Below, one piece after another: positions 18,133 to 34,692 of a stretch of 34,783 nucleotides of DNA (position 1 is the stretch's first letter; every line of letters starts with the position of its first letter). A model generated the notes under the pieces. That model was not told the DNA's origin and searched no databases. It was given only the letters and a program-made list of their open reading frames with translations. Where the stretch lies: the sequence record NC_028992.1; one strand, 5' to 3'. The position numbers and the translations under genes were made by a program.

Positions 18133-18137
18133 ATTTA

Positions 18138-18438: not shown

Positions 18439-18454
18439 TAAACTCCCCAGTTTA
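18439..18454 (-). repeat. 16-mer site upstream of the recombinase
   Basis: TAAACTCCCCAGTTTA on the + strand. Confidence 0.92.
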
Positions 18455-18644
18455 ACACAAAATATTGAATTTTGTGACAAAGCTATCGTGGAATTCGTTG
18501 TTTCTCTTACGGCCCTAAGCGAAACGCCGTGGAGATTTTATATTTCTCTTTCTGAGGATATAACGGGAAAAATAGAAATGCAAGATGAGAGAGGGATAAA
18601 TCAATCTCATAGGAGCAAAATTCGATTTTGGAGGTTGAAGAGAA

Positions 18645-19373
18645 ATGGATAAAGAGGAGCTAAAATTAATTATCCAAAACCTTCCCGATAACTCCCTTAA
18701 ACTTCTAGAGTATTTACAGGAAGCCAAGGAAAAGGGATGGGCTGATATTATTGATATGATTGCCGTAAAACTAGGACTAAAAGAGGAGAAAAAGAAGAGG
18801 AAGAAAGAGGAGAGCGAAATCCTCAAAAAAATTCTGAAACCCTTAGGGAAAAAGAAAATAGAGCATACATGGGATTATAGCGTCGATTTTCTCGAAGCAA
18901 AGAAAGTTTTGGTGAATGCCTATAAAGAATTGTACAATATGAATTTAATGCCATATGAGGTTTATGTTGCCATCCTCATAATTCAGCTAATTAATGGTTC
19001 TAGAATTAAGGAAGCTATTCGGGCGTTTAAGACGTTTGTGGAGTCGAATCAAAGAGAGTTTCAATTAGAGGCTGAGAAGCATGGAAATAATAGATTCTTT
19101 GTCATTCCCGATGTCGTTAAAAATAGGTTATCTTACAAATCAGTGCTAATGATTAGTGATGACAACTTAGAAGCTAGAATAAGAATGTTTACTCTGAAAT
19201 ATTTGAAGACGAACACACATTCTCTTCGTTATTCGCTAATTTCGTATTTAGCGAAAAATGCTGTAGATCCTGCATTAATCGCGAAAATCACTGGGCATAA
19301 GAAATTAGATAGGATTATAAATTATACCCAAACTAAAGATGCCATAGAAATCTTGCGTAAACTAGGGAGTTAA
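18645..19373 (+). CDS. int: Tyrosine recombinase/integrase (small, 242 aa)
   Basis: NGSRIKEA (R), HSLRY (HxxR), GHKKLDRIINY (H, catalytic Y); the stop codon lies in a variant 16-mer. Confidence 0.9.
   Translation: MDKEELKLIIQNLPDNSLKLLEYLQEAKEKGWADIIDMIAVKLGLKEEKKKRKKEESEILKKILKPLGKKKIEHTWDYSVDFLEAKKVLVNAYKELYNMNLMPYEVYVAILIIQLINGSRIKEAIRAFKTFVESNQREFQLEAEKHGNNRFFVIPDVVKNRLSYKSVLMISDDNLEARIRMFTLKYLKTNTHSLRYSLISYLAKNAVDPALIAKITGHKKLDRIINYTQTKDAIEILRKLGS
19358..19373 (+). repeat. Variant 16-mer ending the recombinase gene
   Basis: TAAACTAGGGAGTTAA; its last TAA is the int stop. Confidence 0.75.
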
Positions 19374-19396
19374 AAAACTTCACTTTTCTTATTCCC

Positions 19397-19891
19397 TCAA
19401 TTGATATTAATCAACTCTGTGATTCTTTTTTCGATTTCATTCAATTCCTTATCGACCTTGGTCTCGTCCACAGACCCCTTATCTTCTAATGCGATGACAT
19501 GATCGAGGAAGAGGTTAGACGCCTCGAATAATAATCTCAGTACCTCATTCTTCATTTGTTTGTCCTCGACTAGAACCGCCAATTTATAGAGCTTCTCAAC
19601 GTCCCTGAGTATTCTTGTGACCTGCCCATTATTGCTGTAATCTGTTTCCTTTTTTAGATCACTCCAGTCGATGTCCTTCGGCACCTTACCGTCAACTAAC
19701 GCCATTTCCCACTCCATTAAGACGTTCGAATATTTGTTTAGATACTTGATGAAGTTCTTTCTTGTAGATTCACTTTTCGACGTTTTTGCATAAAAATAGA
19801 TTTTGTCTAAGACCCATGTTAGGTCCCCTATATGTTTAGGGCTGGGCTCAGGGATTTGGACCATTTTTGGTCGAGATATCTTTTTTGTCAA
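19397..19891 (-). CDS. Hypothetical helical protein
   Basis: 164-aa ORF; TTTATATA box upstream; may start at ATG 19864. Confidence 0.7.
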   Translation of the reverse strand: MTKKISRPKMVQIPEPSPKHIGDLTWVLDKIYFYAKTSKSESTRKNFIKYLNKYSNVLMEWEMALVDGKVPKDIDWSDLKKETDYSNNGQVTRILRDVEKLYKLAVLVEDKQMKNEVLRLLFEASNLFLDHVIALEDKGSVDETKVDKELNEIEKRITELININ

Positions 19892-20023
19892 ACTAATATA
19901 TAAAGCTTTTGCCTAATCAGTTGTTACAATTCCCCTTATCCCAAAACCTGACGTAACAGTTTATTGGTGGGGGCTAACCCCCTAGCAAACAAAGTGTTGC
20001 GTCAAAAACAGGGGCTGAAGGAA

Positions 20024-20038
20024 TAAACTGGGGAGTTA
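20024..20038 (+). repeat. 16-mer site
   Basis: TAAACTGGGGAGTTA. Confidence 0.88.
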
Positions 20039-20109
20039 AATGGAAAAAATCCTTAAGAGATTAATGTGGTATCTAGGGCGTGTCGTGCTGCTAGCAGCCA
20101 GCTTTAGTC

Positions 20110-20745
20110 TTAGAATGTTAGTGTACTGCATAATGGGCACTTGTAAGTTCTTTGAAATCGTTTCAAATAATCCTCAGGGTTCTTCTGAATATCTCGGAAG
20201 TATATCCTTTGGTGGTTGTAAAATAACCCCGACCCTCCTTTCCTCAGCTTAGCCTCAGCCTCCACGAACTTTTGGAAGAACTCCGGGTTCTTTAACGCTA
20301 GTACTGCAAAATCTGCTGGTGTCTTGTAAGCAGAGCACCAACAATCGTAAGCTTTTCCGTAAATGTCATAAAGTGGGTTCTTCTTCAGACTGTTAACCTT
20401 TATGTACTCCTCTACATCTTTTTCTGAAAATTCGAAAATAGGAGCATACGTATAAACTTGAAATCTAGGATGAAGATAGAATTTTTTAGCACGACTCTTC
20501 ATCCAGCTCTCATCCTTCCTAACTCCGGTAACTAGAACTATTTCCTCTTTATTCTTATCCTTTAGAAACTCCTGCAAAGGTTGCAGCTTCAGGAAGTGTT
20601 TGCACCACCTATGTGTAATCGTCGGAAATCCGATCCTCTCAACGAGTTTAAAATAATCCTCTTTAGGAGATATAATATCCAGTGGAACGTTATATTATCC
20701 TATGAATTCTTTGTAGGGCAACGTAAAAAAATCACTCATCTTCAA
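20110..20745 (-). pseudogene. PAPS-reductase-family pseudogene lacking the PP-loop
   Basis: GFPTITHRWC...LK, VTGVRKDES and PIFEFS motifs; in-frame TAA at 20697-20695; no SGGKDS; SD AGGAGG precedes TTG 20745. Confidence 0.75.
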
Positions 20746-20810
20746 ATGAAGCCCCTCCTAATTTTCTTAGTTTTTATTTTGATCACGCTTATGATCCCTA
20801 CAGAGATAAT

Positions 20811-21509
20811 TTGTTAGAGAAGTACGGCGACTTCAAGGACTCAGAACTTTGCTTAGTTATACCTACAAGGAACGAGGCCGAAAACTTGCCCATAATCGTG
20901 GGAAAGGTTCTCCCTTACGGCTACTCAATAATTGTTGTTGATGACGAGAGCACGGATGGCACGTTCGAGCTGGCCAAGAGGTTGGCAGAAGAGGGTAAGA
21001 TATCGCTGATAGAGAGACGAGGAGTAAGGGGTTTGGGGTCCGCCATAAGGGTCGGAATTGAGAACGCCCCTTGTAAGTTCGTTGCTGTAATTGACGCCGA
21101 CCTACAGCACCCTCCTGAAACTTTACCTATTTTCCTTGAGAAGCTCAGGGCAGGCTGTGATATAGTTGTGGGTTCGAGGTATACTAAAGGAGGGAGAATA
21201 ATCGGTTGGCCTCTGAGGAGGAGGCTGATCTCCTTAGGTGCTATAATATTGGCTAAGCTACTTATACTGGAGGCGAGGAGGACGAGGGACCCAGTCTCGG
21301 GGTTTTTCGCGATCAACAAGGAGAGGGTTAAGCCCGATATAACGACTTCTGGCTACAAGGCATTACTAGACATACTAGTTAGGAACCCGAAAGCGAAGGT
21401 GTGCGACGTGCCTTATACCTTCGTGAATAGAAGCAGAGGGAAAAGCAAGTTGAGCCTCAGGGAGATCAGGGAATATTGGAACCAGATAGTGGGATATAGG
21501 AAGATATAG
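20811..21509 (+). CDS. GT2 polyprenol-phosphate hexose synthase (DPM1/GtrB-like)
   Basis: VIPTRNE, VVDDESTDGT, IDADLQHPP, VVGSRY, DPVSGF, RGKSKL motifs. Confidence 0.92.
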   Translation: MLEKYGDFKDSELCLVIPTRNEAENLPIIVGKVLPYGYSIIVVDDESTDGTFELAKRLAEEGKISLIERRGVRGLGSAIRVGIENAPCKFVAVIDADLQHPPETLPIFLEKLRAGCDIVVGSRYTKGGRIIGWPLRRRLISLGAIILAKLLILEARRTRDPVSGFFAINKERVKPDITTSGYKALLDILVRNPKAKVCDVPYTFVNRSRGKSKLSLREIREYWNQIVGYRKI

Positions 21510-21522
21510 AAAGGTTGGGAAT

Positions 21523-21960
21523 ATGAGATATTTGCAACGACTCCTGAAATTCGCCATAGTTGGGGGGCTAGGCACTATACTCAACGAGGGAGTTTTCGTC
21601 CTTTCTTCTGAGGCTATTCCCATAGCTGTTTCCCTGGCCTTAGCAATTGAGGCCTCTGTCATCTTCAATTTCGTCCTGAATGACATGTGGACCTTTAGGG
21701 ATAAGAGGAATGGATCTTTCATGGAAAGGCTTGTCAAATTTCATGCTTCCTCCTATCTAGGGAATGTGATTCAATATTTGGCGACTCTAGCGTTACTTAT
21801 CTACTTTCTCCATTTTCCCTCTATCTATCAGGCCCTACTCACATTATTCTTGGATAAATATGGGCAGTCCACCGTTTCGTTGTTACTATCCAATTTCTTA
21901 GGAATAATAGTGGGCTTCATGGTGCGATTTGCGACTAGCCTAAGGTACGTGTGGACTTAA
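21523..21960 (+). CDS. gtrA: GtrA-family flippase-like membrane protein
   Basis: KFAIVGGLGTILN...NFVLNDMWTF...; four TM helices; the stop codon is the TAA of a 16-mer. Confidence 0.88.
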   Translation: MRYLQRLLKFAIVGGLGTILNEGVFVLSSEAIPIAVSLALAIEASVIFNFVLNDMWTFRDKRNGSFMERLVKFHASSYLGNVIQYLATLALLIYFLHFPSIYQALLTLFLDKYGQSTVSLLLSNFLGIIVGFMVRFATSLRYVWT

Positions 21961-21973
21961 ACTCCCCAGTTTA
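21958..21973 (-). repeat. 16-mer site containing the gtrA stop
   Basis: TAAACTCCCCAGTTTA. Confidence 0.92.
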
Positions 21974-22223
21974 ACCCGATTACGGTCAAGCGTCCTGGTG
22001 GTTCGAATATCGTACTTTGGGTTATATTATAGGGACTCGAACTTAGTGGTTCGAAAGTCGAACCATACATGTGGTTATTCTGTAAATTTCGAACCGATAG
22101 ATACGAAATTAGAACCACGAGGGTAGGCACTAACATTCGCGACGAAAAGGAGGTGGAAAGTTTTTCTTGTCATTATGCTAACTCCTTTCACAAATGAGGG
22201 ATAGGGAGAGATTCGAGGAAGAG

Positions 22224-22340
22224 ATGGAATACATGAAAACACATAGGTATGCCATAATAGCCATCGTAATTCTATTAGGTATTGTAATAAAAATAAAAAT
22301 GATTATTAGAAAAATACTCATAAAACTAAGCGGTGGCTAA
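22224..22340 (+). CDS. 38-aa single-TM peptide not in the ORF track
   Basis: GAGGA SD; MEYMKTHRYAIIAIVILLGIVIK...; stop is 3 nt before the next ATG. Confidence 0.45.
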   Translation: MEYMKTHRYAIIAIVILLGIVIKIKMIIRKILIKLSGG

Positions 22341-22343
22341 ACG

Positions 22344-22544
22344 ATGGATCATGAAAACAAGGACAAACCTGAGGAGAGTTTTAGGGAGACCAAGGATCAT
22401 ATGACGCCCGAGGAGATGATAGGTGCAATCGTTGCTTTCGTAATTGGTATTATCGGTTTAGCCATAATTTGCACCCTCCATGATATGGGACAGATTCAGC
22501 AAGTCCTCAACACTTCTATGGTGAAAATCCCTGGCTTCATCTAA
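22344..22544 (+). CDS. Small single-TM protein
   Basis: One hydrophobic helix; GGTGG SD. Confidence 0.6.
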   Translation: MDHENKDKPEESFRETKDHMTPEEMIGAIVAFVIGIIGLAIICTLHDMGQIQQVLNTSMVKIPGFI

Positions 22545-22554
22545 ATCCTAAATC

Positions 22555-23098
22555 CTAAAGAGTGACCTGGTTCCTTTCGACGAGGCAATTGATTTTTGAG
22601 AAATACAATCTTTCATTCTTAAAGACGCTGGCTAATGCCTTGTAGAGGTCGGCGAGTGAAAACCTGTAGTGCGGATATATCAGCTCAGCGTTGTAGTAGA
22701 TAGCACACTCGCCGAATTCATCCTTGAAAAACGAGGAAGGATGGGGACGTTGCCGAAACTGATTGCGACGTATATGTATCCGACGTTTATCCCCTCTCCA
22801 AATAGATGTACCAATTCCCATGATAAAGTGCGTCAGGATCCCTGACCACGTACGGTTTTTCTACAGGGGCAATCACGTTGTTCGGCCACCTCTTTAGAGC
22901 TTCTGTCCTTGCGTCCTCAGAAACGATAAAGCTGTTCCAGAACGTCTTCATGAGTACGTCGTATACTGGCGGAACGAACTCCTTCCCTTCTTTTTCAGCG
23001 ATTATTTTCGAGATGGCTACGTTCTGGGGCTGGCCGTTCTTGTAGGCGAACTTACCCTCGAGTATTTTTTCAATAACGTCCTTAAACATCAGCGTCAT
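22555..23098 (-). CDS. Hypothetical protein, apparently broken by two homopolymer indels
   Basis: Adding one G at 22791-22794 and one T at 22727-22731 joins ORF 22787-23098, an intervening frame (INVGYIYVAISFGNVPILP) and ORF 22555-22821. Confidence 0.5.
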
Positions 23099-23861
23099 CT
23101 TCCTCGAGCTCCCTGTATTTGTCGATCTTTTGCTCGATTATCCTCCTTCTCTTCTCCATCATATCGTTCCAGATCTCACTAGGCATCCTCGGGTTCTTGA
23201 TGTAAAAGAACATCTCTGGGATGTCGACTTCCTTTAGGGTTCCCGATCGGGTTGAGGCTACTTCCCTCCTGGTGAATATTACCTTCCCGTCCTTCTTTAC
23301 CTGTACTCTCCAAGACGCTATGTCCCGGAAGAACTTAGCCAGTCCTACAAGCCTCGGAACCGTGAAGATTATCAGGGATATGAAGTCCTTCACGTAGACG
23401 AAAGCGTCGAAGAGCTCGAGCATCTTCCTCTTCTCTGCAGCTCTCTTCATGTTCCACGTTGAGCTCAGCCCTATTGCGGAAGGGTCGTCGAAAAGCACGA
23501 CGTCGTAACGTTGTCCACTCTTGACGTTTTCTAGGAGTTGCTTGAAATCGTCGACGTCAAATACTATCCTTTTGCGTACCTCATTCATGTCCTCATAGAC
23601 ATAGAACATGGACTGGATGACGTAGCTAGTTTTACCGCTTCCTGGCGGACCGTAAACGATTATTTCATCATGAATTAGTCTATCATTTGTTTTGATTGCA
23701 CTGCTTATGAACCAGACAAGTGGATTGAATCGAAAATCGTTAGCTAGCTGTTTTAGAGCTTCCCATCCTTCTCCCCTAGTTTTCGGAACCATAATTTTGT
23801 GATAAATCGGAAGTAATATGCTATAATAGTTCTGATAATCTTCTAATCGCATCATAGCCAC
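23082..23861 (-). CDS. P-loop ATPase, fusellovirus B251-like
   Basis: GPPGSGKT, VVLFDD, then LIIFTVP..K..R...WRVQV, as recalled for the B251 family. Confidence 0.8.
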   Translation of the reverse strand: MAMMRLEDYQNYYSILLPIYHKIMVPKTRGEGWEALKQLANDFRFNPLVWFISSAIKTNDRLIHDEIIVYGPPGSGKTSYVIQSMFYVYEDMNEVRKRIVFDVDDFKQLLENVKSGQRYDVVLFDDPSAIGLSSTWNMKRAAEKRKMLELFDAFVYVKDFISLIIFTVPRLVGLAKFFRDIASWRVQVKKDGKVIFTRREVASTRSGTLKEVDIPEMFFYIKNPRMPSEIWNDMMEKRRRIIEQKIDKYRELEEDDADV

Positions 23862-24018
23862 CTAGACAGTCGACCAGTTTACTCTTTCTCCTTTCTCCTG
23901 TCTTCAAGAATTGTATAATGTGGTCGATCTCCTCTTCAGTGATTAAGCCTATGCATTCCTCCTTAATGTCGTCTACTAATATACGCTCTAATATCTTGTA
24001 TATTTTCTCCTCTTCCAT
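23821..24018 (-). CDS. Small hypothetical protein
   Basis: SD-preceded ORF in a tight operon. Confidence 0.6.
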   Translation of the reverse strand: MEEEKIYKILERILVDDIKEECIGLITEEEIDHIIQFLKTGERRKSKLVDCLGGYDAIRRLSELL

Positions 24019-24021
24019 TCC

Positions 24022-24303
24022 TCATCCACCCCTGTTAGTAGTATTTTTCTCATTTTGCTTATTTTCCTTGTTGACGCGAGATTCGACCAGCTTCGTTATC
24101 CTCATTATCTTTATTACTACGAGAAGGAACACTATACTACTTATTGTAAGCGACGCGAAATCGTTGTACAAATAGGAGAGAACGGCCATGGCCATCGCCA
24201 TAACCGCAAACAAAATTTCGAAACGAACAATGGGAAAGTATCGCTTTTCTACGATAATATAGACGATCAAGAGTATTGCGGAAACGAAATCGAATATCAC
24301 CAT
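24022..24303 (-). CDS. Three-TM small membrane protein
   Basis: Hydrophobic helices with a polar C-terminal tail. Confidence 0.7.
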   Translation of the reverse strand: MVIFDFVSAILLIVYIIVEKRYFPIVRFEILFAVMAMAMAVLSYLYNDFASLTISSIVFLLVVIKIMRITKLVESRVNKENKQNEKNTTNRGG

Positions 24304-24668
24304 ACATTGACACCGAGATTCGGATATACGACACTCTCAGTTACCGCGATTTCACTGAGTATATCAATCAGTAATTTCGTTGTCCTTTCCATGTAGTCGT
24401 CGATGCTTTCCCCTTCCTTCCTTTCTAGCTCCCTCATTATTTCATTCAATCCCTTCCCTATCTTCCTGGTGATGTAGTCCGTCTTGTCCATGTGTGCTAG
24501 CAGGGATTTCGTTGCACTCACAGTGGCAAGGAATGCAGCTTTCCGTTGCGGGAACGGTATGCTGAAATTGTTTACCTCGTGGATTATCTTGTTTAGTAAA
24601 TGAGTTGCGAACTCCCTGTAGGATCTTAAAGGAGTTAGCTCAATGCCTGCATTCATTCCAGCTGACAT
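24297..24668 (-). CDS. Hypothetical helical protein
   Basis: Overlaps neighbours in the operon. Confidence 0.65.
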   Translation of the reverse strand: MSAGMNAGIELTPLRSYREFATHLLNKIIHEVNNFSIPFPQRKAAFLATVSATKSLLAHMDKTDYITRKIGKGLNEIMRELERKEGESIDDYMERTTKLLIDILSEIAVTESVVYPNLGVNVW

Positions 24669-25039
24669 TCCTGATTCCCCTTCACAGAGAGTAGGTATAC
24701 GTTACCGTTCTTCCCTTTCATCATTTTGATGCAATTTAGCTGGCTGAGGATAGACCTTATCCTTTGCTTAGTTTCAGGCAGGAGTGCGTCGCTCATTTTG
24801 GTGTATAAAACTAGGTCGTCCTCGTCATAGACAACGTCGAAATCGTAAGGTGTGAGGACTACTGGGGGAGAAACTACACGTTTGGCCTTTACGCCTTTCA
24901 GTAGTGCTAGGGACAATAGGGAATGAACTTGGCCGTAGAGAACTACTGCGTTCTTGTGGACTTCGTACTGCTTAAGGAAATTGAACAGCTTGGTTGGTGT
25001 GTACTGTGCCTTCAGCAAAACCATGTACTTCTTTATCAT
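24653..25039 (-). CDS. Hypothetical protein
   Basis: ATGA overlap with the upstream gene. Confidence 0.65.
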   Translation of the reverse strand: MIKKYMVLLKAQYTPTKLFNFLKQYEVHKNAVVLYGQVHSLLSLALLKGVKAKRVVSPPVVLTPYDFDVVYDEDDLVLYTKMSDALLPETKQRIRSILSQLNCIKMMKGKNGNVYLLSVKGNQECQLE

Positions 25040-25383
25040 TTTATCATATCCTCCAGTAATTTCTCAACGAGCTCGTTGCTTTTCGCAGGAATAATGGCAC
25101 CGTGTGTATCGTTATCGTCAAGCTTATTCACGAAGTAGTATTTTATTTTAGGCGTCCTGGACCAGAATAGCCTGAATAGATCGGTAGCGGGTGGCAGTAC
25201 TTCTACTACTTCGTAATTGCCGTAGCTTATTATTCTCATGTGAAGTCCTCCTATGCTACAAACGAATTCTTGCCAGACTGGTAGCGACGTGTTCACTGGA
25301 AATATTATTATTTGTGCTTTTCTTATTTCATCTAAGAATTCCTCTTTCGACTTTGCCTCGGTCTTGTTTAGGAACTTGACCAT
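25036..25383 (-). CDS. Hypothetical protein (start revised to ATG 25383)
   Basis: TTTTTCTTAT element at the same spacing as at 8024 and 26895. Confidence 0.6.
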   Translation of the reverse strand: MVKFLNKTEAKSKEEFLDEIRKAQIIIFPVNTSLPVWQEFVCSIGGLHMRIISYGNYEVVEVLPPATDLFRLFWSRTPKIKYYFVNKLDDNDTHGAIIPAKSNELVEKLLEDMIK

Positions 25384-25423
25384 ATGAAGGAAAAAGAATT
25401 GGGATAAGAAAAATGTTGAACCC

Positions 25424-25795
25424 TCAGGGTGAGGGGACAAGGTCGTATTGTTTGCCCTCATTCCTGAATATTATCATTTTTTTCTCTAAATCAAGGTACG
25501 GTGTGTACCCTTTCAAAAGAGGAAATACCTGCTTAGGTATATGGATGTAGTGGGCATTGTACTCTTTTCCTGCGACTTTCCGCTTTAACACGAGCCACCT
25601 TAGCTGTAGTGTCCTTTCTTGCTCAATTTTCTCATCGCTCTTCCTGAATATTATTACTCTATTCTCTAAATCAAGATATGGTGTGTATTCCTTTAAAAAT
25701 AATGCTATTTGTGAAGGTATTAGAACGTAGTGCATAACAAACACTTCCCCTCCCTTTTTTTGCTTTTTCACAACCCATCTTAATTCTTGCTCCAT
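25424..25795 (-). CDS. Tandem-duplicated AbrB/swapped-hairpin-like DNA-binding protein
   Basis: Two ~48-aa repeats LRW...HY.xIP.Q....LK.YTPYLDLE...IIFR; ATG 25795 is 25 nt below TTTTTTA. Confidence 0.55.
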   Translation of the reverse strand: MEQELRWVVKKQKKGGEVFVMHYVLIPSQIALFLKEYTPYLDLENRVIIFRKSDEKIEQERTLQLRWLVLKRKVAGKEYNAHYIHIPKQVFPLLKGYTPYLDLEKKMIIFRNEGKQYDLVPSP

Positions 25796-25885
25796 CAATA
25801 TTAGGTTCAACCAGTTAGTTAAAAAATTTACTCATCAGTTTACCCACTGAAAGAACAACCCGTATATCAAAATTATGACGAGGGT

Positions 25886-26895: not shown

Positions 26896-26946
26896 AAGAG
26901 TAGGGTGAATTCGAATAAGAAAAACTTGGAACCGATTAAGAGGGGA

Positions 26947-26962
26947 TTAACTGGGGAGTTTA
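26947..26962 (+). repeat. 16-mer site containing the stop of 26960-27727
   Basis: TTAACTGGGGAGTTTA. Confidence 0.9.
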
Positions 26963-27727
26963 CTGGCTTCCTCCCCGCCCTAAAGGGCGAGGCTTGTCGT
27001 TCATTTTGTCAGGATCACAACCACTAACTTTCTTCCAAAGGTTCATGGAGTTCTCAAATTGCTTGTTAGGTTTTCTCCTAGGGAAAACGTATGCGATTAA
27101 AATCGCAACGATTACGCCTAAGTTGATCTTTAAAAGGATAGGTAGACTGGGCATATTTATGAGTGACATCAAAAGGGCTCCGATCATGGTCATATAAATT
27201 ATAGAGCCTATTAATAACGCACCCCATGAAACTAGACAATCTGTTGATGATAACATAGTATTCATTCTTTTAAGAAGTATAAATGGTAATCTGTAAATTG
27301 CTCCATACCTTCCAAGGAAATAGTATATGATTAAGGCAATGGCAACTAAAGAAGTGGGTATCAAATAGATCGAATATGAGAACTGTGCCTGAGGCTTTGT
27401 CATCATCACATATAAACTACTCACATATAAAGTAGTGAAAAATACTATACCCCCTATTGGTAGAAACATAATTAGATCTAATAAAATGAGACGTGAATAG
27501 AAAATAACCATTTCTTTAAATAAAGAAATTACTAAATCTGTTCCGAGTTTTAATGCTTCACGGTTTGTTTTTCCATATCTTAATTTCACCATAGTATATG
27601 CGGTAAATAGTAATATTATTATAAGGGCTACCAAAGAAACACCTGATATCTTTAAATTTGTCCATAATACAGTTGGAGTAGGTTTGCTAGGCAACAAGGT
27701 TACAAGCAAGGCTATAGGGTCTGTCAT
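26960..27727 (-). CDS. AT-rich polytopic membrane protein
   Basis: 5-6 TM helices; visibly lower GC than flanks; the stop lies in a 16-mer. Confidence 0.7.
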   Translation of the reverse strand: MTDPIALLVTLLPSKPTPTVLWTNLKISGVSLVALIIILLFTAYTMVKLRYGKTNREALKLGTDLVISLFKEMVIFYSRLILLDLIMFLPIGGIVFFTTLYVSSLYVMMTKPQAQFSYSIYLIPTSLVAIALIIYYFLGRYGAIYRLPFILLKRMNTMLSSTDCLVSWGALLIGSIIYMTMIGALLMSLINMPSLPILLKINLGVIVAILIAYVFPRRKPNKQFENSMNLWKKVSGCDPDKMNDKPRPLGRGGSQ

Positions 27728-27830
27728 CTGACGAACAATAAGAAATGTGATAATAAAAAGATATTATAAACGCTGTACGTTACGTTACGTACAATCAGCT
27801 ATTATTATTGAGCAAGGGCATTAGTTATCA

Positions 27831-27925
27831 CTTGCTCAATTTTCTCATCGCTCTTCCTGAATATTATTACTCTATTCTCTAAATCAAGATATGGTGTGTA
27901 TTCATTTAAAAATGATACTATTTGT
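27831..27925. repeat. Copy of 25618-25712 (73 bp identical, then degenerate)
   Basis: 27831-27903 equals 25618-25690. Confidence 0.92.
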
Positions 27926-28630
27926 CAGATAATTCATCAAATTCGGCTTCCTTATCCCTATCAACCTCTCCCTGTGCTGGGGAATGTATTGGCTAAAGTC
28001 AATTTTCCTAGTTTCGAACCCCTCTTTTTTGAGCGAATTAACTAAAGGTTCCGCGTAAACGTTCTCGTAAAACGCGTAAACTGGTTTGACAGAATTGACA
28101 ACCCTCAGGTATTCCTGCGTCAGCTCGTCTGACCCTGCATACAATCTGAAGTTCCTGAAAGCGTTGAGCGGAGTGTAGTCCTCGCACGGTGGAGAACCTA
28201 CAATTATGTCGAATTTCTTGGAGGGCTCGTACTTCCTTATATCAATATTAAGGATATTGTATTCGAACTCTTCGTTGTACTTTTTCAGCTCCTTAAATAT
28301 CATGTGTAGTACCTTAACCTTTCCAACATCTATTTCTACGGCTTCAACATAAAGGGGCTGAGGGAAGAAATAGAGGAATGCACCGATAGACCAGCCACCG
28401 ATGCCAGCGAAGAGATCTAGCATCGATTTACCTTTCACCTGGTTCTCCTTGAAGATATGATAGACGGCAAAAGGAGGAATTGCATCCGCGAGGTAATCTA
28501 TTAGGTCGTTTTTAGGTAATTTAAACAGAAGAAACGGAGGAAAAGTTTGCATCCATAATGCTAAATTTTCGTCGAATCGTTTATTGTATCGTGTATCCCT
28601 CCTCCAAATACCGCTTACTGTATTTATCAT
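27902..28630 (-). CDS. C5-cytosine DNA methyltransferase, circularly permuted (IX-X-I-IV-VI-VIII)
   Basis: QTFP (IX-like) and DAIPP (X-like) precede DLFAGIGG (I), GSPPC (IV), ENV (VI) and QHRER (VIII). Confidence 0.8.
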   Translation of the reverse strand: MINTVSGIWRRDTRYNKRFDENLALWMQTFPPFLLFKLPKNDLIDYLADAIPPFAVYHIFKENQVKGKSMLDLFAGIGGWSIGAFLYFFPQPLYVEAVEIDVGKVKVLHMIFKELKKYNEEFEYNILNIDIRKYEPSKKFDIIVGSPPCEDYTPLNAFRNFRLYAGSDELTQEYLRVVNSVKPVYAFYENVYAEPLVNSLKKEGFETRKIDFSQYIPQHRERLIGIRKPNLMNYLTNSIIFK

Positions 28631-28667
28631 TCTAACCTGACCTCCTCCCCCGAAATGCTAGTTTGTA

Positions 28668-29610
28668 TCACTCCCACCATGTCATTAGATTGCTTGTCTG
28701 TGAGACTTTCCGTTCCTTTAACCTCTTTTGTTGTAATTTCTCCTCAATCTTTTCCCTTAACTTTGTCCTCAATCTCTTGGCATCTTCTCTCTCAATTATC
28801 TCTATCTGCGGTTTTCCGAAAAGTGCGTTAGCACCAATCCTTTCTAAGATTACATCCTTTAACTCTAAGTCTATTTCATAGCCTATCGCATCCCTTTTCA
28901 ATTCGTTAGCGACCTTTAACGTAGTGCCAGTCCCAGCAAAGGGGTCTAGAACTGTATCCCCTACGTAAGAGTAAAGCGTAATAATTCTCCTAGCTAGCTC
29001 CTCGGGAAACGGTGCTGTATATTTCGAGTATTTATCCTGAGGCAGTACGTGACCTATTTCCCACACACTCAAATACCACTTCTCCCTTTGAAATTTATTC
29101 ACATCTATTTTACTTTCCTCCTTATTCCTAGGGACAAATTTCCCTGGCTTCTTAAACACTACTATTTCTTCATAAATGAAATCTGGATAATAATAAAGAG
29201 GGTAAGGATGTTGGAAGGAGAACTCCACTCCTCCTACTAATCCTGATGTAAAATTCTGGTTTTTTCCAAATGATCCTTTCTTGATATTTAAAACCCAAGC
29301 TTTGCATAATTTTTATCAAATCTGCAACTATAGGGTAAAGGTCCCCATCTACCCTCATATCAGCTACAACGAAAACCGCGACCCTGCCTTCCTCTAGGAC
29401 CCTGAAAATCTCTTTTCCCACTCCTTTTAGCAGGCTCAGGTAATCGTCATAAGAAGGAAAAAGGTCTGGGAAGTCAAAAGGTGCGTTATAGTAAGGAGGA
29501 GAAGTTAGGACCAAACCCACACTATTATCCTTAACTTCTTTCATATTTCTAGAGTCTCCAAATATAATTCTGACCTCCCTGGCCCTAAAAGGCTGATTTG
29601 TTGTTATCAT
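28668..29610 (-). CDS. Beta-class N4-C/N6-A DNA methyltransferase with a 1-nt frameshift
   Basis: TSPPY in ORF 29170-29610; DPFAGTGTT in ORF 28668-29228; removing one C at 29213-29214 gives GVLL-QHPYP. Confidence 0.85.
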
Positions 29611-30629
29611 AACGCCACCTCGAGCTTTCCTGGCACTAGGGATGGCTCTCCCAGCTCATGTCCGCATCTAGGACACTTTCCTCCGTACATTGCCTTTACT
29701 TCCGAAGGTAGTTTTATGCCGAAAACCTCCTGTCCTACTCTCTCAAATCTATAAAGCTCGAACCCGCAGTTCTTACATTTGTACCTTATAGGCCCTAGTA
29801 TGTTTAGGATTTCCTTGTATCTCATCCTCAAAACTAATTCTGATATATTCAGTGTTTCCGCTATTTCCTTTTGTGTTTTATTAATGTCCATCAACTTAGA
29901 TGCAATATAAACTGCAGCGGCACCGAATGCTAAACGGCTCTTTCCGCTAGTTAATCCCCGTTTTTGCATTTGCTCCACTATTTCTACTACTTTAGTTTCT
30001 ACGGTCAGTGGTAAGTTCAATTTGTTTAATATTATTGGAATATATTTTGTTGGTGTATTCACTTTAGGTTTAAAATATGGCACGACTTCATTGATCCTTT
30101 TTAAAGCCTTCCAGACTGCCCTTTCGGAAAGGTCAAACCTCGCTTTAAGCTCCTGTAAACTCAAGGGAATGTTGTTGATTTGGGACGCATAATATAATAC
30201 AACAGCGATCAGTGCATCGGGCTTAATCCTCATATAGGATTCATCCCTAAATAATTTTTTCACTATGATTGCAGCGGTCTCCTTTACGTGTTCTGGCAAG
30301 CCTAGCTTCGAAGCCTCAGCGTTTAGCCTCGATAGATATGTTACTAATTTTTTATCCTTGTATGAAACCCTAACCGAATTTTGTAATCTTCGCATTTTTA
30401 TTAGTTTAATCTTGTCTTCTACATTTCTATATCCTATTTTTCCTATTTTAGTCGTGAGTCCTTGGTCGTGAACCTTTAAACTAAGCCTTGATCCTACTCT
30501 TTCCCGCTCTAGTCTATCTGTGTCACTGAATGTCCTCCATTCTGGGCCAGGGTCAACTACCCTTTCCTCTATGACCTCTCCCGTCTCGGTGTCTATGAGC
30601 TCTCCTCTTTCGGCGTCGAAGACTATCAT
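29607..30629 (-). CDS. tfb: Transcription factor B homologue with an extra C-terminal Zn ribbon
   Basis: FDAERGE..TETGEV..., B-reader GPEWRTF, HDQGLTT, two cyclin folds, TQKEIA HTH; then CKNC...CPRC. Confidence 0.92.
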   Translation of the reverse strand: MIVFDAERGELIDTETGEVIEERVVDPGPEWRTFSDTDRLERERVGSRLSLKVHDQGLTTKIGKIGYRNVEDKIKLIKMRRLQNSVRVSYKDKKLVTYLSRLNAEASKLGLPEHVKETAAIIVKKLFRDESYMRIKPDALIAVVLYYASQINNIPLSLQELKARFDLSERAVWKALKRINEVVPYFKPKVNTPTKYIPIILNKLNLPLTVETKVVEIVEQMQKRGLTSGKSRLAFGAAAVYIASKLMDINKTQKEIAETLNISELVLRMRYKEILNILGPIRYKCKNCGFELYRFERVGQEVFGIKLPSEVKAMYGGKCPRCGHELGEPSLVPGKLEVAL

Positions 30630-30640
30630 GCTCTCACCCT

Positions 30641-30796
30641 TTAAACTCCCCAGTTTTCTCTAGTTTTTCTTACATTATTTAGATAAAACTCGAGGGCTTC
30701 TCTGACTACATCACTCCTCGAAAGCCTACGGTTCATAGCGTACGTATCGAGTTTTATCAGGAGATCATCGGGAATTTTGACCGTTATAACCCTCAT
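30641..30796 (-). CDS. Ribbon-helix-helix (CopG-like) regulator not in the ORF track
   Basis: MRVITVKIPDDLLIKLDTYAMNRRLSRSDVVREALEFYL...ENWGV*; SD AGGTGA; the stop lies in a 16-mer. Confidence 0.88.
   Translation of the reverse strand: MRVITVKIPDDLLIKLDTYAMNRRLSRSDVVREALEFYLNNVRKTRENWGV
30642..30657 (-). repeat. 16-mer site between RHH and tfb
   Basis: TAAACTCCCCAGTTTT. Confidence 0.9.
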
Positions 30797-30801
30797 TTTT
30801 C

Positions 30802-31020
30802 TCACCTAGTATTTTCCTCTTCTATTATTTTGAGAACACGGAATAGATTAGCCCCAATCTTATCTGACAAGAATGACGATGTCTCTAATCCTTGTTTCGC
30901 CCTGTCGAGATTCTTCAGAATTACATCCATTTTTATCATATGTACTAGGGCTTGCAACCTTCCTGCGTCCTCCTCGAGTTCATTTAATAGTTCTCGAATT
31001 TCTTCTTCTTTGCTAATCAT
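30802..31020 (-). CDS. Small coiled-coil protein
   Basis: Strong GAGGAGG SD; heptad pattern. Confidence 0.7.
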   Translation of the reverse strand: MISKEEEIRELLNELEEDAGRLQALVHMIKMDVILKNLDRAKQGLETSSFLSDKIGANLFRVLKIIEEENTR

Positions 31021-31382
31021 TCCTCCTCCTCCTCTAACTCTTCTTCCTTTGCCAATTGTTCGAATACCTGCTCCTTCTTCTCGAGAAGACTAACGAGCTC
31101 TAACGTTTGTAAGGCCTCCTCCTTAGCCTTGTTGAGGACCCATCGCCTTGCCGTCGCGTTGAAGAGGGCTACGTCGATAATGGTTTTATCCGAAAGGTGA
31201 ATCTTCCCCTTTTTGGCTTTGGCTATGGCCACAGGTGTGATTGCATCTTTCAGCTCCTTACTGAACCTCCTGGCGAATTCTTCCCTCGATTTTTTGCTTA
31301 GCCTTTCAACCACCTGAGAAAAAAGGGCAATAACTTTTTCTTCCTCTCCTTCTTCTCTTGGGGAGCCAATTGCAACGGCCAT
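31017..31382 (-). CDS. Hypothetical protein with acidic tail
   Basis: Canonical AAAAAC-TTTAAATA promoter upstream. Confidence 0.7.
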   Translation of the reverse strand: MAVAIGSPREEGEEEKVIALFSQVVERLSKKSREEFARRFSKELKDAITPVAIAKAKKGKIHLSDKTIIDVALFNATARRWVLNKAKEEALQTLELVSLLEKKEQVFEQLAKEEELEEEEE

Positions 31383-31391
31383 TTCTTCTCA

Positions 31392-31427
31392 ATGACTTTT
31401 GAGTCACTAGGTATATTTAAAGTTTTT
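31392..31427 (-). promoter_or_regulatory. Canonical BRE/TATA with a downstream TGAC-N6-GTCA inverted repeat (possible operator)
   Basis: Minus strand AAAAACTTTAAATATA; plus strand TGACTTTTGAGTCA between the TATA box and the ATG. Confidence 0.5.
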
Positions 31428-31466
31428 GCCTGAATTTTAGGGCCAAATCCCGTTACTCAGTACGGC

Positions 31467-31772
31467 TCAGTAAACTGGGGAGTTTAACACCTCTACGCCA
31501 TCCATGATTTTCTCAATGCCGACTTCCCTGAGAGCCTCGACCAACTTCTTTCCTTTATCGGTGAGAACGGCGAAGATCTTTCTCCCCTTTTCATGATATT
31601 CTATGAGACCTAGCTTGAGGAGGCTTTCCTCGACCGAAGTATAGTAAACCGTCGAGGACACTCCTGATAACTGCCATAGCTCAGATAGATAGAGCGGTCC
31701 ATGCTGGTCTAGCGTGTCGAGTACCCTATATAGATGCTCACATCTTAGGGGATTTGACAGGTTCCGGGGCAT
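31467..31772 (-). CDS. Winged-HTH regulator
   Basis: GLIEY....GRKIFAVLTDKGKKLV wing motif; the C-terminal NSPVY is encoded by a 16-mer. Confidence 0.8.
   Translation of the reverse strand: MPRNLSNPLRCEHLYRVLDTLDQHGPLYLSELWQLSGVSSTVYYTSVEESLLKLGLIEYHEKGRKIFAVLTDKGKKLVEALREVGIEKIMDGVEVLNSPVY
31471..31486 (+). repeat. 16-mer site
   Basis: Exact match. Confidence 0.92.
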
Positions 31773-31831
31773 TTTTCTANTTTAACATCTGTCAGTGTTA
31801 CCTTATAAGTCATTAGTTAGCATCGGTCTAG

Positions 31832-31847
31832 AAAACTCCCCAGTTAA
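31832..31847 (-). repeat. 16-mer site
   Basis: AAAACTCCCCAGTTAA. Confidence 0.85.
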
Positions 31848-31874
31848 TTCCACGTTACGCATGACTTGATGGGN

Positions 31875-31890
31875 TAAACTGGGGAGTTTA
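31875..31890 (+). repeat. 16-mer site
   Basis: Exact match. Confidence 0.92.
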
Positions 31891-31961
31891 ACNCNNNTGA
31901 AGNCNAAACCCCAAACCAATCCAACCGAAATCTATATTAACTACAGTGTGAGGCTCAGCTT

Positions 31962-32240
31962 ATGAGAGCGGCGATGGAAAAAGGATCACAATCAAAATTT
32001 CTATTTAATGCGATGAGTCCCGAGGAATATACTAAGGCTAAGGAGTTCTATGAGTTCCTTAAGAGCATCACTAAATGCACGCATGGGTATCTCAGAATTG
32101 ACCGGAAGAAGCTAGTTGACATGACAGCCGCTTTTATGGAGGTTTCTCCCTATGAGGCCCACCAGATCCTCACAAAAATGATGCAATACGGATGGATTCA
32201 CACGATAGACAACCATTATATAATAGTTAACATAGATTGA
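31962..32240 (+). CDS. Small winged-helix-like protein
   Basis: VSPYEAHQILTKMMQYGWI helix pattern. Confidence 0.6.
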   Translation: MRAAMEKGSQSKFLFNAMSPEEYTKAKEFYEFLKSITKCTHGYLRIDRKKLVDMTAAFMEVSPYEAHQILTKMMQYGWIHTIDNHYIIVNID

Positions 32241-32265
32241 GGANCGTATTTACNAGAAAGNGGGT

Positions 32266-32281
32266 TAAACTGGGGAGTTTA
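32266..32281 (+). repeat. 16-mer site
   Basis: Exact match. Confidence 0.92.
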
Positions 32282-32694
32282 ACACAAATGAAGATTGAAA
32301 AGGGGAAAAATAAAGGGGCTTAAAGCATTCGCCTGCTCTATTGCCNCCATTGCATGCCNCCTGNGNGCCTNTCCTATTACAGTACATGGGCTTACAGTAG
32401 CCTCTTANGGCACTACTATACTATTATTACAATATTCTATTGTTATTCAATAGACTACTTACAGTATACTAGATAGGGGCAAGGCTAGTCCACGATCCGT
32501 TCACGCNCTTGGAAACGGTTTTTGNCGTNCCGTTTTTCTCTACGTATAGAACGTTAGCTTTGAAAAAGTTTCTGTTCGCTTGCTTTGAAATTGTAAAGAT
32601 GTTTTATTCACGTGGGGGTTTNCTTTCAGCTAGCTNAAATAAACTAAACGGCAAATGTCTGCTTTGGTTCTCAAAACTTTGAAATTTTTATCAT

Positions 32695-32710
32695 TAAACT
32701 GGGGAGTTTT
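32695..32710 (+). repeat. 16-mer site
   Basis: TAAACTGGGGAGTTTT. Confidence 0.88.
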
Positions 32711-32749
32711 TTCAGTTTTTTNCTTCACTTTTAGCGGGATTTTTTGAAA

Positions 32750-32765
32750 TAAACTGGGGAGTTTA
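32750..32765 (+). repeat. 16-mer site
   Basis: Exact match. Confidence 0.92.
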
Positions 32766-32838
32766 ACGGTACCTTGAATATTTATTACTAAAATGAGAAA
32801 AAAGGTCGATAGAATCAATTCAGCTAGGCCACGACTCT

Positions 32839-33511
32839 TTAGCCTCCTGGGAACTTCGGCTTATACGCCCAAGCTTCTAGTATATGCTTTGGGACTTCAA
32901 AACCTAGACCCTCTATCACTTTCTTCAGGAAGAGGAATATCCTGTCGAATTTGAGCGTGAACTTCGTCACTTCCACCAGCTTTTGTAACCTAAAAAAAAT
33001 CTTGCTGTACATCCACTGTTTCAGAGAGTCTACCGTCGTGAAGAACTCCACTTTATGTTTCTTCAGTTCCTCCTGGGCTCCAGGAGTAAACGCGTACGCT
33101 ACTATTGCGGGATAGGTGTGATATCCCTTCTCTCTAAGCTTGTTCACTATTTTGTAGATTTGGTTGAACTTCCACGGTAACTGGGCTGGCACAATGGGCT
33201 TCGAGGTTTGTAGCGAGAAGTAAACAACGAATGCCGTCTTCCTCTCCTTTTTCGTCCAATCTATCCGTCTGTGGGTCCTCGAGCTTGATGACGAGGATTC
33301 TGCCTCCGTACCCGTCTTCTTTAATTTCTACGGCTCCGTTCTCGTCCTTTATCCTCGATTTTGCCCACGCTGGCATGCTTATCAGATCGGCGACATCCTT
33401 AACCCCAAGTAGATCCTTCCTTAGGCTGTTAAACGTCCTCACGATCTCTCCTTTCATCTCGTATATCTTCAGCAGGAGATCTTCACGCCCCATATCAGAC
33501 CCCTCCGTCAT
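32839..33511 (-). CDS. Restriction-endonuclease-like (PD-(D/E)xK/Mrr-like) protein split by one extra A
   Basis: Shortening the A5 run at 33248-33252 joins the two ORFs (LDEKERKTAFVVYFSLQTS...AIVAYAFTPGAQEEL). Confidence 0.45.
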
Positions 33512-33836
33512 CCGCGTAGAAGTTTATTTGAGCTAGGATGAAGACAAGGATATAGACTAGCGTAAAGCTTAAAAGCATGTTTGTTAATACTTTACTTGAC
33601 CTCATTAGATCTTTCAGCCCCCTTCCGCCCATTTCCTTTTCCTCTATCTTATATGGTAACCAGGTTTAAAGTCTTTTCTCCCATAATCCCCTTTCTTTAT
33701 ACCTGAAGAGGTTCTAAGACAAAATACCGAACTTCAACTCAAGGATCTCAGAATTACTGCTATAGCTAATTAATGTACTTTGCCCTTTAGCAGAACTAGA
33801 TAAGATTTAAATTTGCTTTATACTTCAACTACATTC

Positions 33837-34238
33837 GTGAGCCAGGCCAAACTCAGGAGGAAGAAAAGAAGTAAGTATGAGATAATATACAACGTCTTAG
33901 AGCAATGCCAGACTGGATCAAAGAAAACCTGGGTTATGTACAAGGCAAATCTGTCTTACGACTTAACGACAAGCTATCTCGACGAACTCATAAAGATGGG
34001 CCTCGTGGAGCCCAAAGACGGTCTATACTATATAACCGAAAAGGGAAAGCAGTTCCTAGAACTCCTCAAGGTCTGGATACAGAAGAAGTCAGAACTCGAC
34101 GACATAGCCAAGATGATTAAGGAGTTCCTCCCTGAAGAGAAAAAGAAGAGAGAGAAGAAGGCAAGCGATACTCAGCCAGCAGAAGCCCCTACTCAGGCCC
34201 CCCAACAAGCCCCACCACCTAGCCCACCAATCAGCTGA
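33837..34238 (+). CDS. Archaeal winged-HTH regulator (COG3432-like) with Pro/Gln tail
   Basis: RSKYEII..VL...KTWVMYKANLSY....YL..L...GLV.....YYITEKG; GTG 33837 follows TTTAAA. Confidence 0.85.
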   Translation: MSQAKLRRKKRSKYEIIYNVLEQCQTGSKKTWVMYKANLSYDLTTSYLDELIKMGLVEPKDGLYYITEKGKQFLELLKVWIQKKSELDDIAKMIKEFLPEEKKKREKKASDTQPAEAPTQAPQQAPPPSPPIS

Positions 34239-34253
34239 GACGGTTGAGGGGCC

Positions 34254-34679
34254 GTGAGCCAGGTGCAAATTATCGGAACCCAAGACAAATTCGTTTTACC
34301 TTCAGGTAAAGAGCTAACGCTTTTCGACGTGCTTCGCTTCTGCTACGGTTTATCAGAATCTGAAATTAATATCCTGATGACACTCCTCAAGTCGAGTCCT
34401 AATCCCAAGTTGGCCGAGGATATAGAACAAGAGCTTCAGGTTAGTAAGGCTATGGTAAACAAGAGCCTCAATAAGTTGCTGAGCTTGGGGCTGATTAAGA
34501 GAACTAAGGAGGCAGGTAATAGAACTGGAAGACCAAGATATGTCTACTTCATTCCCGACCCTGTAGAGTTCAAGGCTAAGCTGGCTAAGGAAATCGAGGA
34601 CTGCACGAATAACATTAGAAATGTCGTAACGACGCAGTTTGTCCCTCCATTTTCCTCACCACATGCTTTTCAAGGTTAA
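34254..34679 (+). CDS. Lrs14/AbfR1-family regulator
   Basis: LPSGKE...DVLRFCYGLS, SKAMVNKSLNKL, GRPRYVY; the stop is the TAA of a 16-mer. Confidence 0.82.
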   Translation: MSQVQIIGTQDKFVLPSGKELTLFDVLRFCYGLSESEINILMTLLKSSPNPKLAEDIEQELQVSKAMVNKSLNKLLSLGLIKRTKEAGNRTGRPRYVYFIPDPVEFKAKLAKEIEDCTNNIRNVVTTQFVPPFSSPHAFQG

Positions 34680-34692
34680 ACTGGGGAGTTTA
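34677..34692 (+). repeat. 16-mer site containing the Lrs14-like stop
   Basis: Exact match. Confidence 0.92.

Follow-up and report, generated by a model that had tools for sequence, protein, structure and literature searches.

The stretch of DNA analyzed here (34,783 bp, record NC_028992.1; in the following termed the window) matches, from end to end and with 100% identity, the complete circular genome of Sulfolobales virus YNP2 (KP282680 / NC_028992). This virus was derived from a metagenome and is related to the large spindle-shaped monocaudaviruses; the gene names used are those of the 60 RefSeq genes, gp01-gp60. The window contains many copies of a 16-mer, TAAACTGGGGAGTTTA (TAAACT-GGGG-AGTTTA), which is frequently extended to an 18-20 bp palindrome, (G)TTAAAC-TGGGGA-GTTTAA(C). 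On balance, this motif is probably a duplex-DNA site of Sulfolobales mobile elements that lies at points of gene gain, loss, replacement and inversion, with the stop codons contained in it being a side effect. It is carried by conjugative plasmids of the pING/pNOB8 family, by these plasmids in integrated form and, among large spindle-shaped viruses, by the YNP2 lineage; copies are also present in chromosomes of Sulfolobales. A first-pass annotation of the window had emphasized that five genes take their stop codon from the motif, and had compared them with integron cassettes or with transcripts ending in a hairpin.

Copies of the motif in YNP2

The 12-nt core AACTGGGGAGTT was found 15 times in YNP2 with at most one mismatch (0.23 copies expected from dinucleotide shuffles); seven of the 16-mers are perfect and eight near-perfect, eleven are situated on the plus and four on the minus strand, and 13 of the 15 are intergenic or located at gene ends. 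Three copies (4549 and 4771, both in gp12, and 18439) were absent from the first-pass annotation. Close relatives for comparison were obtained via the homologues of gp60 and GtrA (L163 and L169, both on one 28-kb contig, and L164 to L168); an exact-match scan of viral contigs additionally revealed a 50-kb relative with at least 14 copies (IMGVR_UViG_3300033159_000002, termed C50) and a 12-kb contig with seven copies (L017). Across 96 distinct contexts, the conserved unit consisted of the 16-mer and a weaker 5' extension; a subclass of copies possesses extended T-rich flanks (TTGAATTTTTCTCAG-motif-TTCAATTTTT). The copies and their associated elements are listed below (coordinates of the window).

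4549..4564, plus strand: perfect copy inside gp12; minus-strand reading NSPVY; kept in L163, L164, L166, C50B, L028, L005 and L024
4771..4786, plus strand: copy with one mismatch inside gp12, 222 nt from copy 4549 (same spacing in C50B, L028, L163 and L166); also reads NSPVY
18439..18454, minus strand: copy between the divergent genes gp27 and int, approximately 33 nt upstream of the promoter-like box TTTATTTTTTAGCCC of gp27
19358..19373, plus strand: degenerate copy (TAAACTAGGGAGTTAA) that makes up the final codons of int (gp28) together with its TAA
20024..20039, plus strand: copy between gp29 and gp30; flanks gp29 together with copy 19358 as direct repeats
21958..21973, minus strand: copy whose first TAA is the stop codon of gtrA (gp32); single-copy junction, where L169 has an ORF110 cassette between two copies
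26947..26962, plus strand: copy supplying the stop codon of gp46; left boundary of the gp46-gp49 insertion of YNP2
26963..29606, minus strand: gp46-gp49 block (membrane protein, C5 methyltransferase, split methyltransferase), missing from L163
30632..30667, minus strand: remnant of a coiled-coil gene that was deleted except for its 3' end; one frame EKLEKTGEFKG*, frame of the ribbon-helix-helix (RHH) gene ...RKTRENWGV*
30641..33493, minus strand: conjugative-plasmid-like module of gp51, gp52, gp53, gp54, gp55 (the latter on the plus strand) and gp56/gp57
30642..30657, minus strand: copy at the stop codon of the RHH gene (gp51), directly upstream of the Shine-Dalgarno sequence of tfb
31471..31486, plus strand: copy within the last codons of the winged helix-turn-helix (wHTH) gene gp54 (LNSPVY*)
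31832..31847, minus strand: copy with two mismatches, 59 nt upstream of gp54 in a divergent intergenic region
31875..31890, plus strand: copy upstream of gp55; direct-repeat partner of copy 32266
32266..32281, plus strand: copy downstream of gp55; collinearity with L163 stops 5 nt beyond
32695..32710, plus strand: copy of the extended class (T-rich flanks) in a non-coding region of 598 nt
32750..32765, plus strand: copy where nucleotide homology to the plasmids pAH1 (17754-18470) and pING1 starts; kept in L017, L088, C50 and L166
34677..34692, plus strand: copy whose first TAA is the stop codon of gp60, 91 nt upstream of gp01; followed directly by ORF151/159 in relatives

Gene gain, loss and rearrangement at motif copies

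Motif copies lie at gene and module borders in both orientations and coincide with insertions, deletions, replacements and inversions between close relatives. In L169, gtrA is followed by TTAAACTCCCCAGTTTAAGCCGAT, the open reading frame (ORF) ORF110 and the same 24 nt again, i.e. by direct repeats with the motif, whereas YNP2 has one copy and no ORF110; the two BLAST alignments between YNP2 and L169 overlap exactly on this single YNP2 copy (21958). The 2,644-bp gp46-gp49 block of YNP2 replaces a spacer of approximately 10 nt between the motif and the tfb stop codon of L163, its left junction being the edge of the motif, and C50 carries a different insert of 0.77 kb at the same place. A zinc-finger ORF is present directly after the motif and Shine-Dalgarno sequence of copy 30642 in L163, C50 and L017 and absent in YNP2 and L166. 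ORF151/159, also absent in YNP2, starts 8-11 nt after copy 34677 in all relatives, with a second copy at its far end in L166 to L168, and a replacement of 1.6 kb (32287-33854) begins 5 nt after copy 32266. Taken together, five of the six indels relative to close relatives had a boundary at most 14 nt away from a copy (p = 1e-3 with boundaries confined to non-coding DNA and gene edges).

The integrase gene int is enclosed by inverted copies in YNP2, and L033 and L035 have it in the opposite orientation relative to gp27; since a second motif copy was not found in the latter two contigs, this inversion is only suggestive. The gene gp55 is conserved as a single-gene unit from plasmid pKEF9 to the viruses. 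The earlier proposal that genes were captured or trimmed at the site is thus borne out as far as gain, loss and rearrangement at the copies are concerned (ORF110, gp46-gp49, ORF151/159, the zinc-finger ORF and the RHH relic); a general truncation of C-termini did not emerge (see below).

Two side observations refer to these regions. The genes gp48 and gp49 (28668-29610, minus strand) represent a DNA methyltransferase split in two ORFs with 88-92% protein identity to a chromosomal locus of Stygiolobus sp. CP850M (L046); sequence comparison suggests that the gp46-gp49 insert was recently acquired from a host or another element. Among the 31 N's in the YNP2 genome, 23 are found within 31780-32722, around the motif-flanked gp55 and the non-coding region, a cluster that fits, and suggests, a sampled virus population with heterogeneous sequences at these junctions.

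Relation to the conjugative plasmids of Sulfolobus

A scan of species-representative genomes gave at least about 20 Sulfolobales loci among the 120 matches listed, many of them multi-copy with conserved T-rich flanks; the carriers among these matches were Stygiolobus, Metallosphaera, Acidianus, Sulfolobus and Sulfolobales metagenome-assembled genomes, and most other matches listed were single chance hits. A Sulfolobus contig (L139) encodes a TraG/VirD4-type coupling protein besides four motif copies, and this protein, used as bait, led to the classical Sulfolobus conjugative plasmids in the plasmid collection: pING1 contains 11 copies (up to two mismatches; 0.02 expected), while core copies number 14 in pKEF9 and 17 in pAH1. 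Among deposited archaeal viruses, the motif is multi-copy only in YNP2 (SMV1 has one degenerate copy).

Judged by sequence, the YNP2 16-mer is the multi-copy motif of the Sulfolobus conjugative plasmids in a new viral carrier: the 16-mer is identical, there are multiple copies per replicon in both orientations, and most are located at gene borders. New is the motif in a virus host; its kind is already known from the conjugative plasmids. Stedman et al. 2000 (J Bacteriol 182:7014) and Greve et al. 2004 (Archaea 1:231) reportedly described TAAACTGGGGAGTTTA as the repeated 'recombination motif' of these plasmids (pING, pNOB8, pKEF9, pHVE14, pARN, pAH1); the motif string itself gave no match in the literature searched. 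The plasmid motif has, as far as we are aware, been linked to the instability of Sulfolobus conjugative plasmids, and we know of no mechanism for this link. Its association with rearrangement borders is here demonstrated between relatives of a virus.

The relationship extends to the context of individual copies and, besides the operon, to the non-coding region of YNP2, which is plasmid-like as well. Plasmid homologues exist for gp51 (CopG-type RHH), gp53, gp55, gp56 (84% identical to the pAH1 homologue) and gp57; the order wHTH - gp53 - ... - RHH - motif and Shine-Dalgarno sequence matches pKEF9 22175-24104, the module also matches pAH1 17847-18491, and the nucleotide homology between YNP2 32742-33469 and pAH1 starts at copy 32750. 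The copy in front of tfb (30642) is homologous to the copy at the junction of the coiled-coil gene and the next gene in the conjugative plasmids, L017 and L088, and the pair around gp55 (31875/32266) corresponds to a direct pair around the pKEF9 homologue of gp55. YNP2 differs from the plasmids as a virus genome with structural genes, in which the conjugation genes (traG/trbE) are absent although the plasmid operon homologues gp51, gp53, gp55 and gp56/57 are present. The aCcr1 family of cell-division repressors, to which gp51 (30641-30805) belongs, has been reported in YNP2, other Sulfolobales viruses and conjugative plasmids (PMC9976878).

Conservation of the site and candidate binding proteins

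In 22 orthologous comparisons of YNP2 with L163, L164 and L166, the 16-mer matched at 346 of 352 positions (98%), the 40-nt flanks of the same copies at 1394 of 1787 positions (78%; Fisher p = 3e-26); to judge from these alignments, selection maintains the site. In plasmid traG genes, two internal copies are conserved across TraG proteins of only 35-75% identity and are read in different frames (ETGEF, GKLGSL), which indicates that the constraint acts on the DNA and not on the peptide. Likewise, NSPVY occurs twice in gp12 and at the end of gp54 because motif copies encode it, and many proteins of the gp53 family owe their N-terminal NSPV(D/E)G to a motif copy in antisense, which has decayed to GSPREEG in gp53 of YNP2 (31017-31382).

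The strong conservation of every copy would also be expected if the motif served first of all as an operator or architectural site bound by an element-encoded protein from the shared operon, in the control of transcription, replication or segregation, with recombination as a by-product of identical sequences of 16-24 bp. We regard this alternative as possible, if rather unlikely. The palindromic arms would suit a dimer; the copies at 18441, 31834, 31877 and 34679 and plasmid copies are placed 33-120 nt upstream of genes and point toward them, and the subclass with T-rich flanks clusters in long non-coding regions of plasmids and viruses. The distance to TATA boxes or start codons is, however, not fixed, and there are copies where convergent genes end (19358) as well as far within genes (gp12, traG). 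Binding alone does not explain exact cassette indels, though it is compatible with them.

As the protein in question, the gp53 family is a lead only: it accompanies the motif in every element examined, with an antisense copy in its own 5' end, whereas SMV1 and SMV3 possess RHH and gp55 homologues without the gp53 family and the motif in the regions examined. The family comprises only 21 cluster representatives in 1.84 billion proteins; the gp53 model is all-helical (pLDDT 89), and its best PDB matches, XRE-type helix-turn-helix proteins, were not significant (E ~2), which speaks against the operator alternative. The same applies to gp51, which was rejected as binding protein because the aCcr1 family binds a 9-bp box different from the motif (PMC9976878). 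PlrA was discarded as well, being absent from YNP2, C50, L163 and L166.

Two further functional readings of the motif were rejected. A promoter reading (TFB recognition element and TATA box, perhaps for the viral TFB) is contradicted by the lack of a constant distance to start codons and by the existence of a separate, well-placed box, TTTATTTTTTAGCCC. A reading of GGGGAG as Shine-Dalgarno sequence is disfavoured by the GGTGA that the tfb copy has of its own, by the antisense position of half of the copies and by a weak anti-Shine-Dalgarno match; several plasmid copies are located 2-3 nt before a start codon. The box TTTATTTTTTAGCCC was found on the minus strand at 1510, 8706, 12597, 13026 and 18391, i.e. 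19-24 nt upstream of the ATG codons of gp04, gp17, gp20, gp21 and gp27, and also in the relatives L163, L166, L033 and L035. Its spacing fits a TATA box for leaderless transcripts, and it is probably the promoter of the structural-gene module.

Stop codons within the motif

The five stop codons named in the first-pass annotation were all confirmed, with their coordinates, in arms of the motif: the TAA of int (19371-19373) lies inside the degenerate copy 19358-19373, the TAA codons of gtrA (21958-21960) and gp60 (34677-34679) are the first three bases of the copies 21958-21973 and 34677-34692, the stop codon of gp46 (26960-26962) lies inside copy 26947-26962, and that of the RHH gene (30641-30643) shares two bases with the 16-mer 30642-30657 and all three with the 18-mer. 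Its statements on two further genes were equally correct: gp54 passes through copy 31471-31486 as LNSPVY and stops one base past it, and the Shine-Dalgarno sequence of tfb (GGGTGAG) follows directly after copy 30642-30657.

The probability of such an overlap depends on the null model. With uniform placement, it was 0.034 per site (p = 9e-5 for at least five of 15), and strictly non-coding placement gave p = 5e-5; if placement within the last five codons of a gene was allowed as well, it rose to 0.17 per site (p = 0.06 for five of 13). Hence the association of the motif with gene ends is real, and the stop overlap is mostly mechanical once a copy abuts an ORF. It arises because the arms carry TAA in two of three frames on both strands, as in the extended 18-mer TTAAACTGGGGAGTTTAA, and because ORFs are butted against the site. 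Of six ORFs reaching a copy, five have their stop codon within it; where an arm is mutated, the ORF reads on (arm GTTCAA in L166, where the RHH gene runs four codons further). The first-pass annotation had itself cautioned that a motif with TAA on both strands would produce coincidences, and this accounts for most of the overlap. In the conjugative plasmids, whose annotation is incomplete, overlap was rarer (pING1 none of 11, pKEF9 two of 14, pAH1 one of 17 copies; approximately 7% versus one third of the YNP2 copies). The coincidence with stop codons follows from sequence and position of the site and has no function of its own.

C-termini of the genes ending at the motif

A truncation or replacement of C-termini by the site, as the first-pass annotation had envisaged, is not the general rule: the ends of int, GtrA and gp60 are intact where testable. 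Homologues of the integrase from SMV1, SMV3 and five contigs have the same end point (...ILRKL[SG][STA]*); the motif copy in int of YNP2 differs from the corresponding sequence of motif-less relatives only in the last two codons, L033 has a perfect core at this position, and SMV1 and SMV3 have no motif there. GtrA retains the entire Pfam domain, which extends to residue 144 of 145. In the suggested check against chromosomal gtrA, the homologues of S. tengchongensis and Saccharolobus agreed with GtrA in length and end, and the TAA of the S. tengchongensis gene is free of the motif. The host gene terminates as ...TGGGCC TAA AATG, those of YNP2 and L169 as ...TGG(A/T)CT TAA ACTCCCCAGTTTAA; the junction between host-like and viral DNA is accordingly the stop codon itself. 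All close homologues of gp60 end in QG*, with the same TAA in the motif at the DNA level (TGA variant in L164 and L165), and distant ones end approximately 10 residues earlier; homologues of gp60 were found in the protein database and none in the phage or plasmid collections.

The situation is different for the RHH gene and gp46. RHH homologues have longer, unrelated tails, and the tail RKTRENWGV* of gp51 is an out-of-frame reading of the 33-nt relic EKLEKTGEFKG*, i.e. of the C-terminus of the coiled-coil gene that follows RHH in the plasmids, L017 and L088 (...RETGEFKG* in L088, L017 and pAH1). The last 20 codons of gp46 cross another conserved hairpin-like element and then the motif. Annotated C-terminal tails at motif sites (RHH, gp46) are to be distrusted. 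The element in gp46 (CCTCCCCGCCCTAAAGGGCGAGG, 26973-27011) recurs just after the gp18 homologue in C50 (L008 7099-7138, 90% identical) and in L163, and its sequence is also among the pMGB1-matching CRISPR spacers printed in PMC3839810.

Comparison with integrons, RNA hairpins and recombinase sites

The attC sites of integrons are imperfect palindromes of approximately 57-141 bp that fold in single-stranded DNA. The likeness noted by the first-pass annotation extends to the outcome: a palindromic site encloses single genes, relatives differ by the exact presence or absence of a cassette (ORF110), upstream ORFs often end in the site, and direct copies flank the single-gene units ORF110, gp55, gp29 and ORF159. 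A true integron-like system, in which the motif would be a single-strand-folding analogue of attC recombined by the tyrosine integrase of the element and capturing promoterless cassettes, might be further suggested by the tyrosine recombinase encoded in every motif-bearing element seen. Nevertheless, such a system is scarcely credible here. The site is far shorter (16-20 bp) and has no stable single-strand fold at the growth temperature (75-80 °C); relative to the motif, the gene of a unit may run in sense (gp55, ORF159) or in antisense direction (gp29, ORF110); the copies are dispersed around the genome instead of being arrayed behind attI and a common promoter (Pc), neither of which was identified in YNP2, where no search was aimed at them; and no IntI-type integrase was identified in YNP2. 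The gp28 integrase itself gives a marginal match to PF00589 (27.5 bits) and has relatives of 80% identity in the motif-less viruses SMV1 and SMV3. The system is integron-like in outcome, and it is not an integron.

The second proposal of the first-pass annotation, a hairpin that terminates, processes or stabilizes transcripts at gene ends, is likewise not supported. It could draw on the six copies at gene 3' ends, on the free energy of -5 to -9 kcal/mol of the 20-mer RNA hairpin at 37 °C and on the palindromic extension, which co-varies by lineage (GTTAAAC...GTTTAAC in YNP2 versus GGTAAAC...GTTTACC in C50). At 75-80 °C, however, the free energy of the YNP2-type hairpin is not below zero (RNA and DNA parameters); of the copies at gene ends, three are in sense and three in antisense orientation, although the GGGG/CCCC centre never varies; many copies are situated upstream of genes, in non-coding clusters or, conserved, within ORFs; no consistent T-tract follows the copies, and no Rfam family matched anywhere in the window. 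The instability at growth temperature and the presence of both orientations relative to transcription argue against an RNA signal as well as an attC-like fold, and we consider an RNA function very improbable.

In a comparison with the tyrosine-recombinase core sites loxP, FRT and dif, a 6-6-6 reading of TTAAAC-TGGGGA-GTTTAA is possible, in which the asymmetric centre would give direction; direct copies accompany deletions and insertions, and inverted copies accompany an inversion (int). The arms of loxP, FRT and dif are 11-13 bp long, in contrast to the much shorter 6 bp of the YNP2 site, for which we know of no cognate recombinase or cleavage positions. A different precedent are the promoter-stem-loop (PeSL) cassettes, which, reportedly by Arbiol, Comeau and Krisch in 2010, mediate mosaicism in T4-type phages. 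In both cases, plastic regions contain small ORFs separated by repeats of a short, conserved non-coding element, which offers homology for the shuffling of single genes. PeSLs differ in their length of approximately 50 nt, their recognizable early promoter and terminator hairpin and their known primary function, whereas the YNP2 site is common to viruses and plasmids.

Proposed mode of action

For a duplex-DNA site at points of gene exchange, the following course of events may be envisaged. A protein would recognize the site as double-stranded DNA, with two 6-bp inverted arms around an asymmetric core, similar to a recombinase core site or a dimeric operator. Crossovers would take place within or right beside the site, either catalyzed by an enzyme specific to the site or arising from short-homology recombination among the numerous identical copies, and would place the upstream ORF directly against the motif. 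Such an ORF may share its native TAA with the motif (gtrA, gp60) or may run into the motif and stop there (RHH, gp46); the copy in int would have arisen in place by a change of the last two codons.

Several observations weigh against this interpretation. The deletion of the zinc-finger ORF took place between two GGGGTGAGNGCATG repeats, beside the 16-mer and not in it, and that of ORF151 begins 12 nt downstream of the copy, likewise outside the 16-mer; as these junctions lie beside the motif, short-homology recombination near a conserved site fits as well as site-specific exchange. An acyltransferase indel at 1529/1554 is not associated with the motif at all. No protein acting on the site was identified, the conjugative plasmids and YNP2-type viruses have no integrase type in common, and gp28-like integrases are present in SMV1 and SMV3, both without the motif. 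Finally, the near-perfect conservation of all copies, including those within genes and at fixed positions of the plasmid operon, exceeds the need of a pure recombination scar and suggests that the site has a further primary role, such as protein binding in regulation, replication or segregation.

Other features of YNP2 and its relatives

The minus-strand gene gp26 (1,282 aa, Gln-rich) contains 8-9 tandem 33-nt repeats at 14488-14880 that encode TGRITEPIPEP near the C-terminus, adjoined by repeats of 21-24 nt; as bait for relatives, gp26 matched only YNP2 itself. The TFB homologue gp50 (29607-30629, minus strand) begins at position 11 of the 43-position Zn-ribbon profile, so that the start of the Zn-ribbon is missing, and the same truncated start was found in C50, L163 and L166. 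The PAPS-reductase-like gene gp30 (20110-20577, minus strand) covers only profile positions 99-161 of 175, i.e. a C-terminal fragment, and its DNA is 88% identical to part of an Acidianus tailed spindle virus gene. A direct repeat of 95 nt (97% identical) connects the gp43 region (25618-25712) with the 3' end of gp47 and the sequence just downstream (27831-27925), inside the gp46-gp49 insert; a third copy at 25438 is 63% identical. In L169 (positions 1-100, the start of the 28-kb contig), three tandem ACGTTCAAAAGATAACGGGGTAA precede a degenerate motif (TTAACTAGGGAGTTAA) upstream of a glycosyltransferase gene.

Implications

Since a virus lineage also keeps the motif under strong selection, its study can draw on a second set of genomes that is independent of the plasmids and shows exact gain and loss of single genes at the copies. 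The gtrA junction demonstrates that a host-type gene is joined to the motif exactly at its stop codon, and the analysis indicates small proteins to be considered as motif binders. It is conceivable, albeit unlikely in our estimation, that the 18-bp site is the core of a dedicated site-specific cassette-exchange system, whose recombinase or accessory protein would come from the host or from a gene of the shared small-ORF operon, and which would move single genes between plasmids and viruses; if true, this system would be an archaeal, duplex-site counterpart of the integron that links plasmid and virus gene pools. Copies of the motif mark the places at which, in thermoacidophilic archaea, material passes between the gene pools of plasmids and viruses.

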